This document shows positions 4,201 through 13,200 of a DNA stretch of 64,000 nt, in pieces. Each line of letters opens with the position of its first letter. Position 1 is the stretch's first letter. The notes beneath the pieces are model-generated. The model saw only the letters and a program-made list of their open reading frames with translations. It searched no databases and was not told where the DNA came from. Location: NCBI GenBank assembly GCA_002269645.1, contig NIVC01001670.1, forward strand, positions 62,001 through 126,000, read 5' to 3'. This DNA is from Macrostomum lignano. Its lineage: Eukaryota. Both the position numbers and the translations under genes were made by a program.

Positions 4201-7200
4201 TGGCAGCTCCTGATCTGATCTAAAAATGGCACCTCGATTGAAAAAATGAATAATAAAAAGCAAATCATGATCTAAAAATGGCATTTCAATTTTTTAAAAG
4301 TTGAATCTCTGGAATGGCTTCACCTCAATTGCAAAAGTGACGTCTCCTTTCGATCTAGAAATGGCACTTCAATGGTAAATGCTGGCACCTTTTCGCTTGA
4401 CAACAAGGAAAACAGGTTGCATCATTTGATCTAAGAAATGACTTTCAGCACTAAACCACGGCCGCAACTCACGTCAAAGGCCCCGGCTTTAATCTGGGCG
4501 TACAGCCGAGACTGGTCCTCGTCCCAGAATGGCGGGTAGCCAACCAGCAGGATGTAGAGAATCACACCTGCATGGGATGAGCAGCTCAGTCAGTTGCTTG
4601 TAACACAAATATAAATACCAGAATGAGAATTAGCTATATTAGGCACAGCTCAAGCCGCCTCACCGCAGGCCCAGACGTCCACGGGTTTCCCGTATGCATC
4701 TTTTCTCAGCACCTCCGGCGACAGGTAGCCGGGTGTGCCGGCAAAGCCTGGACAGGTGGAAACCGATTGCGTCATTAGCGAGGTCATAGATACACCAGAA
4801 TCTACACAGCAATGACTATTCGGCAAAGATGCTACTAATATGAGCACATAGGCAAGTAGCAACTAAGGTAGTGCGATAATAACATTCAGCCTAGATTAGC
4901 TACTCATAGCAGTAAATAGCGAAAGTCACTGCAATCTATCACGGCTGTATGACAGGCGAGGCCAAATGATCTACTAAAAAATCGGGCTAAACTTGAAAAT
5001 AATCCGCTACAGCCTATCTGTACCATTGATTGGAGGCAACAACACAGGTAATAAATAAGGTAGTACAACGTGCTCGACTGCAATATTGATTAGCTAGGTA
5101 TTGTTCCTCTAAGCAAAATCGATATGCCTTAATCAAGTCATAAAATTATGAGCAATCTGCATTTCGCCTAATCTGTCAGTGCTATAGCAGCTATCAAGGC
5201 TACTACTCACAACATTGTCAGAAAGGTTACTGGAAACTACAGCTCTACAGATGTCAATCTCATGTCAATATGCAACAAGAATAGAGCCTTGCAGGGTATG
5301 ATAAATGACACACGGCATTCGCTGGCAGGAAGGAAAACAGTTAGTTGCCAAGGCCTGTCAGACACAGGGGTTCCAACATTAGGAATATAGTTTACAGATA
5401 ATCTTGAGCAGCTGAGACAATGAAAGATTGTTAAGGAGAAATTGGAAATATTGGAAACAGTCCTTCAGTAGCCCGCTACCCTCTCTCCACCCGGTCCTTC
5501 AGTAGGTTGCTACCCTCTCCCCCCGGTCCTTCAGTAGGCCGCTACCCTCTCTCCACCCGGTCCTTCAGTAGGCCGCTACCCTCTCCCCCCGGTCCTTCAG
5601 TAGGCCGCTACCCTCTCCCCCCCGGTCCTTCAGTAGACCGCTACCCTCTCTCCACCCGGTCCTTCAGTAGGCCGCTACCCTCTCTCCACCCGGTCCTTCA
5701 GTAGGCCGCTACCCTCTCCACCCGGTCCTTCAGTAGGCCGCTACCCTCTCTCCCCGGTCCTTCAGTAGCCCGCTACCCTCTCCCCCCGGTCCTTCAGTAG
5801 GCCGCTACCCTCTCCCCCCGGTCCTTCAGTAGCCCGCTACCCTCTCTTCTCTCCCCGGTCCTTCAGTAGACAGCTACCGTCCCCCCGGTCCTTCAGTAGC
5901 CCGCTACCCTCTCCCCCGGTCCTTCAGTAGCCCGCTGCGCTCTCCCCCGGTCCTTCAGTAGCCCGCTACCCTCTCTCCACCCGGTCCTTCAGTAGACAGC
6001 TACCCTCTCCCCCAGGTCCTTCCATGGTTATTCCAGCCCTATCAACAGACCTCAATTAACAAATTGCCATGATGAAGGAACTGGTGCAATCGAGATGGAT
6101 AGAAACGTGGAATAAAAATGGAACAATAGCAAGGTAAAAGAAGTGTTTAGAAGGCTAACTGATAAGAGTAGGCACCAGGCGTATTGCTAAAAACTTCAGA
6201 ACAGATTCGTGCATCATGAGTGCTGCTCTGGCAGCAACTAAAATTCTGGCGGGAAGGCGCGACTCAAAGTAGCTGGAGGCGCCCGCGACGCCACGCCGAG
6301 GCCACGCGCGCACGGAACGTACCAAACCAGGCGGCCTGCTCGCCCTGCACCTCAATGGCCAGGCCGAAATCGGCCAGCTTGACGGCGGCGCCTTTGGCTT
6401 TGCTGGCGAGCAGCAGGTTCTCCGGCTGGAGGGAGCGGCAGCGATAGAGAGTGGGGGAGAGGCGGAGAGAGGAGTGCGGTAGGAATGTAAATCTCTGGGC
6501 TTCCTGCGGGCGGAAACCTCAGGTGGAAAATTTTGCTTTAACAATTGTGTCCGCAAATGAGCTGTTCTTTCTTCTATATATACTCATAAAACTGGTGACA
6601 CAGTCATGACACACTGGTGACACAGTCATGACACACTGGTGACACAGTCATGACACACTGGTGACACAGCCATGACACACTGGTGACACAGTCATGACAC
6701 ACAGGTGACAGTCATGACACACAGGTGACAGTCATGACACACAGGTGACACAGTCATGACACACTGGTGACGCAGTCATGACACACTGGTGACACAGTCA
6801 TGACACACTGGTGACACAGTCATGACACACTGGTGACACAGTCACGACACACTGGTGACACAGTCATGACACACAGGTGACAGTCATGACACACAGGTGA
6901 CACAGTCATGACACACTGGTGACACACTGGTGACACAGTCATGACACACTGGTGACGCAGTCATGACACGCAGGTGACACAGTCATGACACACTGGTGAC
7001 ACACTGGTGACACAGTCATGACACACTGGTGACGCAGTCATGACACGCAGGTGACACAGTCATGACACACTGGTGACGCAGTCATGACACACAGGTGACG
7101 CAGTCATGACACACTGGTGACACAGTCATGACACACTGGTGACACAGTCATGACACACTGGTGACGCAGTCATGACACACTGGTGACACAGTAATGACAC

Positions 7201-10200: not shown

Positions 10201-13200
10201 GCAGCTACAGCAGGGGAATTGCACCTGGGAGCAGCTACAGCAGGGGAATTGCATCTGGGAGCAGCTACAGCAGGGGAATTGCACCTGGGAGCAGCTACAG
10301 CAGGGGAATTGCACCTGGGAGCAGCTACAACAGGGGAATTGCATCTGGGAGCAGCTACAGCAGGGGAATTGCACCTGGGAGCAGCTACAGCAGGGGAATT
10401 GCATCTGGGAGCAGCTACAGCAGGGGAATTGCACCTGGGAGCAGCTACAGCAGGGGAATTGCATCTGGGAGCAGCTACAGCAGGGGAATTGCATCTGGGA
10501 GCAGCTACAGCAAGGGAATTGCACCTGGGAGCAGCTACAGCAAGGGAATTGCACCTGGGAGCAGCTACAGCAAGGGAATTGCACCTGGGAGCAGATAACC
10601 CGATAAAAACGCTTGCTAGAGTCAGAAAGGAGTCCCAGATTCTCGGTTCTCTGAGACGCTCTGAGAATTCCAGATCGAGTCTAACCAGCGAGTTTATCGA
10701 GCAAAGCAGCCCAAATCATATGCATGGCAAGTGACAGCCAAGAACACAGATAGCCAGCAAACCGAGAGAAACACAATTACAAGTATATTGAAGAGGAATT
10801 TTTAAAAATGAAGCAAAATTTTCGCGACTCGGGGGGGGGCACGCGAAACGCACCGAACCACGCCGAGGACTGGTCGGGCTGCAGCTCGATGGCCAGGCCA
10901 AAGTCGGCCAGCTTAACCACCGCGCCCTTTGTTTTGCTGGCGAGCAGCAGATTCTCCGGCTGCATTTATGTTTTTTATTGCATCATTAATTTTGTTTGTA
11001 GCGGAGCTTACGTCATCAAAATTGGGTACAGCAGAATATTGTAACAGACAAAACACTGCAGGTACAACTACTAGCAAAATGCTAAAATAAGAGACTGAGG
11101 CACAGACAGGCTAAATAATAAAACAGGACACACGAAAGCAAACAGCACTACTTAGTTGTCAGTAGTTTGGTGCAACGCGGGATTATCTTTCAATATGAGG
11201 TATCAAATAGTTTTCAACTAAAACGCGCTAGAAAACGATGCACTCCCCCCACCACCCGAATTCCTGAGCAGTTTGGCCGTACTTGAGAACCAAGCGCGTG
11301 ACAAAGAAGGCATTAGAAGTGGTATTTAAAAACTGTCGCCAGTTGCAGTTTGACGTTCGCTCAATCAGGCGTGCTAAATAAGCCAAAGCTTGGTCTATTT
11401 TCTGACTTGATATTTCACTTTTTCCTCCCTAACTATCTAGTCTTTGCCGCCCAACCAACATTCTGCCAATTCCCCAGTCCCCAAACTGCAAGAGGAAGAC
11501 TGCGGAGGTACAGCAGGAGGCCATAGAACAGGAAGAAGGCGATAAGGCGAAGGCCGGGCCAGGAAATGCCTGGGGGTCTGCCAGGAAGAGACTGGTCTGG
11601 GAAAAGGACGGCGCACTCCAGCCGACTCCCAGACTAACCTACTTAGCCACCCCTCCATATCTCTCACCGGGAGATGAAGGCCCGGCAGAGACGGATAAGG
11701 AAGAGCGGGGAGAGGCTGGAAGGAGACGGGGAGGCAGCTGAGGAGCGCCCGCGGAATACCGAGGATGAGGAGAGGCTGCTGGGGTGGGAGTAGGAAAGGA
11801 CAGAGCGGATGGAGAGTCCAATAGAGAGTTGGAGATGAGGCGGCAGAAGCAGCAGCAGCAGAGCATGGAGAGGGGCCTCGCTCCCCGTCCCATCCCCCCA
11901 CCCCTATCTCTTCCCATTCTGCTACTCGTCGAAAGAGCCGGGGGGAAAATGTTTCGGATAGCTCGGAAGAGACCTCTCTATCCTAAATGCAGGCCTCAAG
12001 AGATAGTAGAGACTTCTAAATAGTAGGGGGAATGAGGCCGGCAATAGGATGGGCCGGGTAATAAGGCGGGCGGTTTGAGACGAGAGCGCAACACGGTGGA
12101 GCACGCGACAGACGCGCAGAGAGTCCGGAGGCGAGGCGGTGAATCACCTTAATTAATTAACAGTTAGCAACTGCAGTCTCCGTTTCGCTCCCGTGCTTAG
12201 TGGCATCATCCCGCTAGGCAGTGATGAGGGATGCCTTGCCAGCAGCAACAACAGCGAATTGGCCGCTCCCTCCGGCGGCAGGGGAAATCGGGCAGGCAGG
12301 GCAAGCAGGGCGGTCCTTTCCCCTGCCGGAACGGCGGGCCCCCACAGCATCTATTTTCCAACCCTGGCTACAGAGGCAGGAACGGGAGAAACTAAAGAAG
12401 GCAAACAAAAGCCGGCTACACGCGCTCGGAGAGGGGGGAAGAAAGTGACTGCCGCCCTCCCAGTCTAAAGAGGAGCATTTAATTGCGTTTTTATGATCGA
12501 AATAGAGAGAGGGGGAGAGCATAGCTGCACAAGTGCGGCCGCCAGTGTGCCAGTGAAATTGTATTGTGCAAGGCCTGCCTGCCGGTTGCAAACAACAGCT
12601 TTAGTGCCGAGGCATATGTTGCGTAGTTTTCCTGTTTTGTTATTCTTAATATTATTAACATCAACACCAGAAACCGTGCAGGTGCAAATTTGTCTCCAAT
12701 ACTGATCTACACAATCTTGAAATACGCAGAAGTAAAAAATTATATTTAAACCAATTAAATATGCAAGGAGCTTCGAGGCTGAACGACTTGATAAAAAACC
12801 GAAACGTGATTGCACCAGCAGTGCTCCAAGCAGCTCAATACAGCATTAGCCTAGCCGGCAGTATCAATTACTGCACAATGAAATGCGCCCGCGCATCACT
12901 CAACAGAGCCTAGCAACTCCCCGCCCTAGCAACCCCATCGATGCAAAATAAACGCCAGAAGGAGCTGCTTAAGACCTGGAAATGCACTGGGCAACAGCAG
13001 CCAAGTGCGCTGTGTTTTTGTTTTTGAGGCAGGCAATTTTTCTTTTAGCTTGTCAGCACCAATTAATTATTGAAGAACAGACAGCAGCTGAGAGCGCAAG
13101 TGAGAGGCGACAGATGCTGATTAATGAAGCGGGGAAGGGGAGCGGCCGGCCTGGGACACAGGTAGATAGAGTGATGAAGATGAAGGAAACTGGACAGACC

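Follow-up and report, generated by a model that had tools for sequence, protein, structure and literature searches.

The isoform diversity of CaMKII is usually credited to its variable linker, and the kinase needs no phosphorylation of its activation loop. Mutually exclusive exons within a kinase domain are familiar from the MAP kinases, as exemplified by JNK exons 6a/6b and by the CSBP1/CSBP2 forms of p38-alpha. Within the CaMKII family, exons 6A and 6B of mouse and human Camk2d are mutually exclusive, the exclusivity having been shown in mouse by long-read sequencing (PMC12060085), and the pair is also entered among tandem-duplicated exon substitutions, with its age given as 'Chordata' (PMC9741552). 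A preliminary description of the locus studied here had stated that in vertebrate CAMK2D it is the neighbouring HRDLK exon that has alternative versions, which is right according to the same report (PMC12060085). Camk2d thus alternates a 73-nt exon that ends in HRDLK and encodes the alpha-E helix and the catalytic loop, whereas in the flatworm Macrostomum lignano the duplication affects the exon directly downstream, which encodes strands beta7-beta8, the DFG motif and the activation loop. In a further class of systems, the exon clusters of the Dscam and 14-3-3 zeta type, docking-site/selector RNA pairing is at work (PMC6071210). For M. lignano, we consider it likely that the two copies, here called 6B and 6A, form a tandem-duplicated, mutually exclusive exon pair of CaMKII.

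The window, meaning the whole stretch of 64,000 nucleotides that was analysed (positions 62,001 to 126,000 of M. lignano contig NIVC01001670.1), carries a CaMKII (CAMK2) gene on its minus strand, to which all exon coordinates below refer. The part of this gene within the window (locus tag BOX15_Mlig004924g1) spans 2297-25770, with the ATG of exon 1 at 25770. Exons 2, 3 and 4 (20013-19859, 16901-16847 and 16766-16701) are followed by constitutive exon 5, the HRDLK exon (15562-15634, 73 nt), which corresponds to vertebrate exon 6, occurs once in M. lignano, and ends after HRDLK in phase 0 at 15562 with the donor gtgagt. Beyond the duplicated pair lies constitutive exon 7, the GFAGTPGY exon (4664-4747, 84 nt), which starts in phase 1 at 4747 with GCTTTGCC behind the acceptor ccag, and then come exon 8 (4567-4473), exon 9 (3745-3866, 122 nt), exon 10 (3666-3583) and exon 11 (2339-2297); the linker and hub exons fall outside the window, past its position 1. 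The window exons encode a kinase domain and a CaMKII-type regulatory segment that match solved CaMKII structures with E = 6e-178, and the full-length model of a sister copy (P0001) contains the PF00069 and PF08332 (CaMKII_AD) domains. The exon sizes, in order 55, 66, 73, 103/106, 84, 95, 122, 84 and 43 nt, equal what we take to be the sizes of vertebrate CAMK2 exons 4-12 (vertebrate exon 10 having 123 nt), and by this match the duplicated exons correspond to vertebrate exon 7.

Two homologous exons of 106 and 103 nt, both running from phase 0 to phase 1 with GT-AG ends, had been described previously, and they were located exactly where that description had placed them, with no constitutive exon between them. 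Exon 6B, the derived copy (10854-10959, 106 nt, 35 codons plus 1 nt), follows the acceptor aaatgcag, begins with CCGGAGAAT and closes with GTGGTTCG. Exon 6A, the canonical copy (6323-6425, 103 nt, 34 codons plus 1 nt), follows the acceptor ctccctccag, which has an intact AG and a strong polypyrimidine tract, and extends from CCGGAGAAC to CTGGTTTG. The donors, GTGCGT for 6B (10848-10853) and GTACGT for 6A (6317-6322), both carry a non-consensus C at +4. The copies are identical at 85/102 nucleotides and 28/34 amino acids, and the earlier codon comparison was reproduced exactly, with nine synonymous codons, six amino-acid changes and one extra codon; PENLLLASK and a further stretch of ten residues do not vary. 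When human CaMKII-alpha was used as a tblastn query, both copies were matched (E = 1.4e-15 and 4.3e-11). Because the length of each exon leaves a remainder of one on division by three, a transcript that includes both meets a stop within exon A and a transcript that skips both meets a stop within exon 7, so that the frame incompatibility holds as claimed. The intron between 6B and 6A (6426-10853, 4428 nt) is much longer than steric exclusion would allow; two minisatellite arrays, at 8617-10594 with a 30-nt unit and at 6591-7934 with a 22-nt unit, make up about three quarters of its length.

Introns full of minisatellites, in an assembly (Mlig_3_7) that is PacBio-based, repeat-rich and redundant, and a homopolymer-type deficit of 1 nt in the window copy are what one would cite if the doubling were an assembly artefact or represented two adjacent partial gene copies. 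We regard such an origin as wholly improbable, since the order B-then-A is found on four separate contigs, namely those of three window-type copies and of an old paralog with entirely different introns, and since exon 6 alone is doubled: exons 4, 5 and 7 are single, and there is no second copy of any other kinase exon. The objection of separate tandem gene copies or misassembly, which the preliminary description had raised against itself, therefore fails, as there is one gene and the same exon order on four independent contigs. The deficit itself lies in exon 9, which has 122 nt in the window copy and 123 nt in the two other window-type copies (L002, L003), with TACCATCG in place of TACCCATCG. 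The GenBank model (P0121) is cut short by the frameshift that this causes, and the window's own copy may lack full-length kinase coding.

The most informative comparison was provided by the old paralog (L001; NIVC01001526.1, Mlig004461g1), which served as the one within-genome comparator of the selection test. It shows the same order as the window (exon 5, B of 106 nt, A of 103 nt, exon 7), with intact AG acceptors and frames and with donors identical to those of the window, GTGCGT for B and GTACGT for A; its exon B has kept both the frame and the 35-codon length. When the interval from exon 5 to exon 7 was compared between the two genes by blastn, only exon 5, B, A and exon 7 aligned, the introns being unalignable. 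By the Nei-Gojobori method, the constitutive exons gave pS 0.64 and pN 0.023, A against A gave pS 0.47 and pN 0.013 (pN/pS about 0.03), and B against B gave pS 0.87 and pN 0.098 (pN/pS about 0.11), with synonymous sites saturated between the two genes. Long-term purifying selection has thus acted on all four exon copies, as the preliminary description had proposed in preference to decay, the old paralog having kept both exons at a low pN/pS. The two A exons differ by one residue (F/Y) and 12 synonymous differences. Almost all other CaMKIIs listed have the F of the window copy, and the change therefore most likely sits on the paralog lineage. Within exon 6A, a run of 44 nt (6334-6377, codons 17-30 plus 2 nt) is nucleotide-identical to the paralog, while 43% of third positions differ in the constitutive exons; this identity reflects either constraint on synonymous sites or a conversion tract, and part of the A-A identity could accordingly come from gene conversion and not from selection. 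The two loci can also be told apart by their residues, which are HS..IVHRDLK upstream and RKDAYGKP downstream in window-type genes, and HN.. and RKDPYGKA in the paralog.

These values bear directly on the proposal of a dead pseudo-exon, under which exon A of the window would be a functionless duplicated remnant that has never been spliced in. That none of the three window-type copies includes exon A in its annotated CDS would fit such a remnant, yet a pN of 0.013 against a pS of 0.47, in a comparison where the introns have become unalignable, does not, and neither do the intact AG acceptor, its strong polypyrimidine tract and the conserved donor. Moreover, A is the form found in the transcript of the paralog and is itself the universal CaMKII sequence. 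We consider this explanation very unlikely.

A more serious competitor is set by the transcript-derived models. The GenBank CDSs derive from genome-guided RNA-seq assembly (PMC5730564), for which the sets SRP082513 and SRR2682326 were used. Exon B is present, and A absent, in the models of all three window-type copies (Mlig005291g1, Mlig000566g3 and Mlig004924g1), and exon A is present in the model of the paralog Mlig004461g1. Among the transcript-derived models and protein records, neither A in a window-type gene nor B in the paralog was found; the protein cluster of P0001 has three members only, all with B, and exact look-ups found the swapped isoforms absent from the protein collection, an absence that is uninformative. 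Since the annotation removed alternative transcripts only where their CDS was identical, the other isoform was either unassembled or rare. The ab initio models of the paralog (P0072, P0444) read through both exons.

Taken at face value, these records would suit a partitioned use, in which an ancestral gene alternated its two exons and, following the gene duplication, B alone came to be used by the window-type gene and A alone by the paralog, the other copy in each having fallen silent too recently for decay to show; both catalytic variants would then still be made, though by different genes. B stands in every window-type model and A in the paralog model, no swapped isoform is on record, and ongoing constraint is not demonstrable from the recent copies. 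Among the three recent copies (the window copy, L002 and L003), exon A shows 0/103 differences and the unique flanks differ by about 1.3% (P about 0.26); with non-satellite flanks so little diverged, the three-copy comparison has no power, and a recent loss of use is possible. An apparent flank divergence of about 5%, from which recent constraint on exon A might have been argued, was rejected as an artefact of minisatellite misalignment. Against partitioned use, exon A of the window is one residue away from that of the paralog and keeps the near-universal state, despite a pS of 0.47 and unalignable introns, and exon B of the paralog still has its frame, its 35 codons, its AG acceptor and a GTGCGT donor identical to that of the window. 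Undecayed as the supposedly unused exons are, silencing would need to have been very recent, and independent in both genes. On balance, we judge partitioned use to be unlikely, though it is the strongest of the rivals, and from the state of the exons we infer that one gene uses both. M. lignano would thus probably make two versions of the kinase core by exon choice.

With regard to the proteins, A is the canonical form, present in all other CaMKIIs listed, and B is derived. In human alpha numbering, B carries V163L, G165P and E166D together with one extra residue before W170, at the tip of the activation loop; the two also differ at position 146, which is already variable. Common to both products are the catalytic loop HRDLKPEN, strands beta7-beta8 and the DFG motif. 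When aligned with solved CaMKII kinase domains, B shows a single one-residue insertion, in the loop, and divergent eukaryotic CaMKIIs (L005-L008) have a loop as long as that of B, beginning with IEL, as their sole form of exon 6. Judged from these alignments, the B loop appears compatible with a working kinase. The IEL-loop fragments were also considered as possible exon duplicates and were rejected, the IEL exon being the only exon 6 in those genes.

Searches beyond M. lignano at the protein level, in metagenomes and with HMMER found no B-type sequence elsewhere. A protein search with exon B and short flanks returned no B-type exon of any relative, only proteins of <100 aa, and missed even P0001 itself; its matches were mostly single-exon ORFs on genomic contigs. 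A metagenome scan with a B-specific degenerate pattern gave two matches, neither of them CaMKII, and when 1.84 billion representatives were searched with exon B by HMMER, the exon-sized CaMKII fragments were all A-type; the top matches, TPR-like repeat proteins, were discarded as spurious. The restriction of B to M. lignano in these searches fits a lineage-specific origin, in agreement with the independent evolution proposed earlier. As for regulatory elements, blastn between the window gene and the paralog found no conserved intronic element. RNA folds near the exons (local z of -0.9 to +0.9) and intron-intron duplexes (z of -1.05 to +1.15) did not exceed shuffled controls, both being crude tests that could miss a small element. 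In the literature, we found no description of alternative splicing of the DFG exon in any CaMKII or of CaMKII splicing in M. lignano.

The preferred reading, that of a mutually exclusive pair, can be set out as follows. The canonical exon would have been duplicated to give the pair, with A ancestral and B derived, and this duplication would have preceded an old duplication of the CaMKII gene in the Macrostomum lineage, both daughter genes keeping the pair. Each mature mRNA would contain exactly one of 6B and 6A; transcripts with both or neither would be unproductive and presumably removed by nonsense-mediated decay, which would thereby enforce exclusivity. Both exons may still be in use in each gene, probably with the preference reversed between the genes or with the exons serving different cell types, and the changed loop may alter the regulation of the kinase or its handling of substrates. 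One may further speculate that the A and B variants co-assemble in one holoenzyme.

Should this be true, mixed A/B holoenzymes would allow combinatorial tuning of a kinase whose diversity had been placed in the linker. Alternative kinase-core exons have been documented only recently, with Camk2d 6A/6B, and M. lignano would add a second, independent case, located in the activation segment itself. The very long retention of the pair in two paralogs suggests that variation of the catalytic core is under selection. M. lignano is genetically tractable, with transgenesis available, and one kinase with two activation loops would offer a natural experiment to probe the role of the loop. There is also a lesson for annotation, given that ab initio models of the paralog fuse both exons.

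The comparison with known systems places this locus closest to Camk2d. Both belong to the CaMKII family, and in both an exon of the kinase core, with a length not divisible by three, has been duplicated in tandem; a Camk2d transcript carries one copy, as a transcript of M. lignano would, and the isoforms differ, or in M. lignano would differ, only in a homologous stretch of the catalytic domain. Unlike in Camk2d, the HRDLK exon of M. lignano is single in both loci. Among other spiralians, tandem duplicates of this exon (E5), absent from M. lignano, occur in molluscs, an annelid and parasitic flatworms: annotations of Haliotis, Physella and Octopus contain isoform pairs that differ only in E5, the monogenean Cichlidogyrus has two 73-nt E5 copies 126 nt apart, a divergent E5 is used in models of Opisthorchis and Calicophoron, and models of Owenia and Nucella read through both copies. 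No B-type exon 6 was found in the protein models of these E5-duplicated taxa, and on the Cichlidogyrus contig a single exon 6 is fused to exon 7, with a gap of only 253 nt between E5 and E6. We raise, tentatively and as something we hold to be possible rather than likely, the broader view that the CaMKII core gained exon switches repeatedly and independently across Bilateria (vertebrates, molluscs, annelids and parasitic flatworms switching the HRDLK exon, and Macrostomum, which has no such HRDLK switch, the exon of the DFG motif and activation loop), with B representing a functionally distinct loop state (G165P plus the extra residue) that is cell-specific and mixed with A in dodecameric holoenzymes. 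The MAP kinase pairs resemble the M. lignano pair in having homologous exons in the catalytic domain that keep the catalytic residues and alter surface or loop segments, but they belong to an unrelated family and affect the docking region of the C-lobe, not the DFG/activation-loop segment. Clusters of the Dscam type likewise involve a choice of one among homologous exons arranged in tandem; unlike them, M. lignano shows neither a conserved intronic element nor pairing above background, and frame incompatibility is the only visible mechanism of exclusivity. In essence, M. lignano has a real and probably functional exclusive exon pair, a device already known in CaMKII one exon upstream, in mammalian CaMKII-delta.

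The CaMKII gene of the window, BOX15_Mlig004924g1, lies on the minus strand, with the ATG of exon 1 at 25770 and the kinase and regulatory-segment exons running to 2297, the linker and hub exons being located past the window start. Over window positions 35842-1, identity with L004 (contig NIVC01001670.1, assembly GCA_002269645.1) is 100%. AG and GT ends were found on every CaMKII exon in the window, and the exon sizes of 55, 66, 73, 103, 84, 95, 122, 84 and 43 nt equal those of vertebrate CAMK2 exons 4-12, with the exception of 122 nt where vertebrate exon 10 has 123. Between the constitutive exon E5, which ends in HRDLK and in phase 0 (15634-15562, minus strand), and the constitutive exon E7, which starts with (G)FAGTPGY (4747-4664, minus strand), the preliminary description had placed two homologous exons for the DFG motif and the activation loop, and their coordinates were recovered exactly: exon B, with 106 nt and 35 residues, at 10959-10854, and exon A, with 103 nt and 34 residues, at 6425-6323, both on the minus strand. 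Recomputation also returned its codon counts (9 codons with synonymous differences, 6 with an amino-acid replacement, and 1 additional codon) and the frame incompatibility of the pair, as a transcript of the window gene with B and A meets a stop within A and one with neither meets a stop within E7. Second copies of other kinase exons were sought by tblastn, and none was detected.

The CaMKII introns in the window are mostly minisatellite, with units of 21-47 nt in up to 70 copies plus one (CTGT)n array. These arrays occupy 1-771, 1498-2070, 2446-3489, 5460-6022, 6591-7934, 8617-10594, 13233-14866, 16996-17638 and 18433-19645, and their lengths vary among the three window-type gene copies. Upstream of CaMKII, the called-gene list for the contig (L004) gives a DEAD-box helicase gene on the plus strand at about 33465-35842, one ORF giving a PF00270 hit, and long GC-rich repetitive ORFs, including a PGGMDNL-type repeat at ~54747-55061, extend over 45600-57000 with no convincing Pfam match. 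Exon 9 of the window copy (3745-3866, minus strand) has 122 nt, against 123 nt in the other two copies (L002 and L003), with one C missing from a C-run (TACCATCG vs TACCCATCG); this 1-nt deficit breaks the frame, and the GenBank model of the window copy (P0121) is cut short. Either the assembly may have lost a base in the homopolymer, or this redundant copy may carry a genuine frameshift. The assembly is PacBio-based and Pilon-polished, and the line has duplicated chromosomes (PMC5730564).

An A-type exon, with 34 codons and the loop IEVQG[DE]Q.AWF, is present in all of the best 120 CaMKII proteins (molluscs, arthropods, annelids and schistosomes) with a single exception, the window-type P0001 of M. 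lignano, in which the exon is B; therefore, A is ancestral and B derived. The changes common to both M. lignano B copies are V163L, G165P, E166D and one additional residue before W170 (human alpha numbering), and position 146, which is variable among CaMKIIs generally, also differs between B and A. B keeps the catalytic loop, the beta7-beta8 segment and the DFG motif intact, and alignment with solved CaMKII kinase domains places its lone one-residue insertion in the activation loop. B-type exons 6 outside M. lignano were absent from the CaMKII protein matches, from 1.84 billion representative proteins, from the JGI metagenomes and from the contig of the monogenean Cichlidogyrus casuarinus, which has only one exon 6, fused to exon 7; no published description of a DFG-exon alternative in CaMKII was found in the literature searched. 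Compact eukaryotic CaMKII genes (L005 and L006, ENA ERZ25072196; L007 and L008, ENA ERZ25069837) have a single exon 6, with an activation loop as long as that of B and starting IEL (IELEDPSDTAWY and IELEKSTEFAWY), and thus the additional loop residue and the V-to-L change are also the sole form in distant lineages. In the gastropod Gigantopelta aegis, the Gnomon isoforms X3 (P0003), X7 (P0123) and X1 (P0125) have 25 additional residues (PENLILASKAGSPAVKLADFDLDCE) ahead of the canonical exon 6 sequence, in which DFG has decayed to DFD. This piece has the look of a degraded tandem copy of exon 6 that the predictor spliced in frame.

The history of the pair was approached through the old M. lignano paralog Mlig004461g1 (locus L001, NIVC01001526.1), whose protein (P0002) shares 86% identity with P0001. 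The order at this locus is the same as in the window, namely E5, B (106 nt), A (103 nt) and E7; the AG acceptors of B and A are intact, and their donors, GTGCGT and GTACGT respectively, are the same non-consensus hexamers. Window gene and paralog are told apart by residues in E5 (HS versus HN) and in E7 (DAYGKP versus DPYGKA). Between the two genes, the constitutive exons gave pS of 0.64 and pN of 0.023, with synonymous sites saturated, while exon A gave 0.47 and 0.013 and exon B 0.87 and 0.098. By using blastn with 9-nt words over the full E5-E7 interval, the four exons aligned and nothing else did, the introns showing no similarity. Since both genes have the same layout, saturated synonymous sites and unalignable introns, the B/A exon duplication is older than the gene duplication. 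Judged by this divergence at the sequence level, purifying selection has acted on each of the four exon copies during most of the period after the gene duplication, and the selection proposed earlier for B and A is borne out by their intact state in the old paralog and by low pN relative to pS. The same comparison contradicts the view that exon A is a never-functional pseudo-exon, because an exon never used or long dead would resemble the introns, and the recurrence of one layout on four contigs contradicts an assembly artefact; the B/A pair is a real feature.

A 44-nt run inside exon A (window 6334-6377, minus strand; L001 17576-17619), covering 14 consecutive codons plus 2 nt, shows no nucleotide difference between the paralogs. 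At third positions, the 5' half of the exon has 9/15 differences and the 3' half 3/19 (Fisher p = 0.012), compared with 111/260 (43%) in the constitutive exons; exon B has no comparable run between window and paralog. The run is either an exonic regulatory or splicing element or a small gene-conversion tract.

Behind the GenBank CDSs of the assembly stands a genome-guided transcriptome built from RNA-seq (SRP082513 and SRR2682326) with StringTie/TACO and supplemented by a mapped de novo assembly, and the alternative transcripts dropped from the annotation were only those with identical CDS (PMC5730564). B is in the models of all three near-identical window-type copies (Mlig005291g1, Mlig000566g3 and Mlig004924g1), and A is in the model of the paralog Mlig004461g1. 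Since RNA-seq-derived CDSs contain each type, both exons are spliced into real M. lignano mRNAs. Neither sequence clusters nor exact look-ups turned up a window-type transcript with A or a transcript of the paralog with B. The annotation agrees with the main rival reading, a partitioned use in which the window type employs only B and the paralog only A, the unused copies being recent relics. This is nonetheless unlikely, as both unused exons would have stayed perfect despite diverged synonymous sites and introns, and silencing would therefore need to have struck each of the two genes only very recently. Very probably, B and A constitute a long-maintained functional pair of alternative exons, with one gene presumably using both; use of exon A in the window-type genes may nevertheless have been lost very recently.

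A recent constraint on A, suggested by the three window-type copies (0/103 vs ~5% in the flanks), was rejected as a minisatellite misalignment artefact; their unique flanks differ by 1.3%, and 0/103 in exon A is unremarkable (P ~0.26). Two UniRef models of the paralog (P0072 and P0444, L001 15660-17630) are ab initio and read B and then A, splicing at the AG within CCAG, the opening four bases of the paralog's exon A, which gives 106 + 99 = 205 nt in frame and a product with beta7-DFG duplicated. These double-exon models are probably an annotation artefact, and from the paralog's sequence in-frame double inclusion is formally possible. Window-type exon A starts CCGGAG, where the internal AG leaves 97 nt, out of frame, with no in-frame double inclusion.

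As for the choice of a single exon, the reading frame is the sole visible device of exclusivity, B and A both being 1 mod 3, such that single inclusion alone is productive, and nonsense-mediated decay would remove transcripts with double inclusion or double skipping. Steric exclusion is impossible, because the intron between B and A measures 4.4 kb. No intronic sequence conserved between window gene and paralog was retrieved by blastn from E5-E7, and RNA folding and duplex tests around B/A gave no signal over shuffled controls. The donors of B and A are weak, with C at +4, and are conserved in the paralog; among the constitutive donors in the window, 1/9 has C at +4 (E10, GTGCTA) and most are GTGAG-type. 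Weak C+4 donors on both alternative exons resemble what regulated exons tend to have.

Exons 6A and 6B of mouse and human Camk2d, versions of the 73-nt HRDLK exon, are mutually exclusive by long-read sequencing, which confirms the earlier statement that vertebrate CAMK2D alternates this neighbouring exon (PMC12060085), and they are listed among human tandem-duplicated exon substitutions with a 'Chordata' age (PMC9741552). Isoform pairs differing only at the HRDLK exon occur in the molluscs Haliotis, Physella and Octopus, and both copies are read in models of the annelid Owenia (P0424) and of Nucella (P0004). Cichlidogyrus casuarinus has two 73-nt HRDLK copies 126 nt apart (L011, JBJKFK010003508.1, 2380-2452 and 2579-2651), both with AG/GT ends and one encoding SHTMFETLSAIDYCHSQNIMHRDLK; in trematodes, the models P0398 (Opisthorchis) and P0401 (Calicophoron) employ a comparably divergent copy of the HRDLK exon. 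The 6A/6B-type duplication may thus be much wider spread, or older, than that 'Chordata' age. In M. lignano, duplication of the HRDLK exon is absent. The B/A pair is like Camk2d 6A/6B in being a probable mutually exclusive exon device in the kinase core of the same gene family, and differs from it in duplicating the next exon, for DFG and the activation loop, and in lineage. Rather than a new principle, the M. lignano pair would extend the recently recognised switching of CaMKII core exons to the activation segment, in a tractable model.
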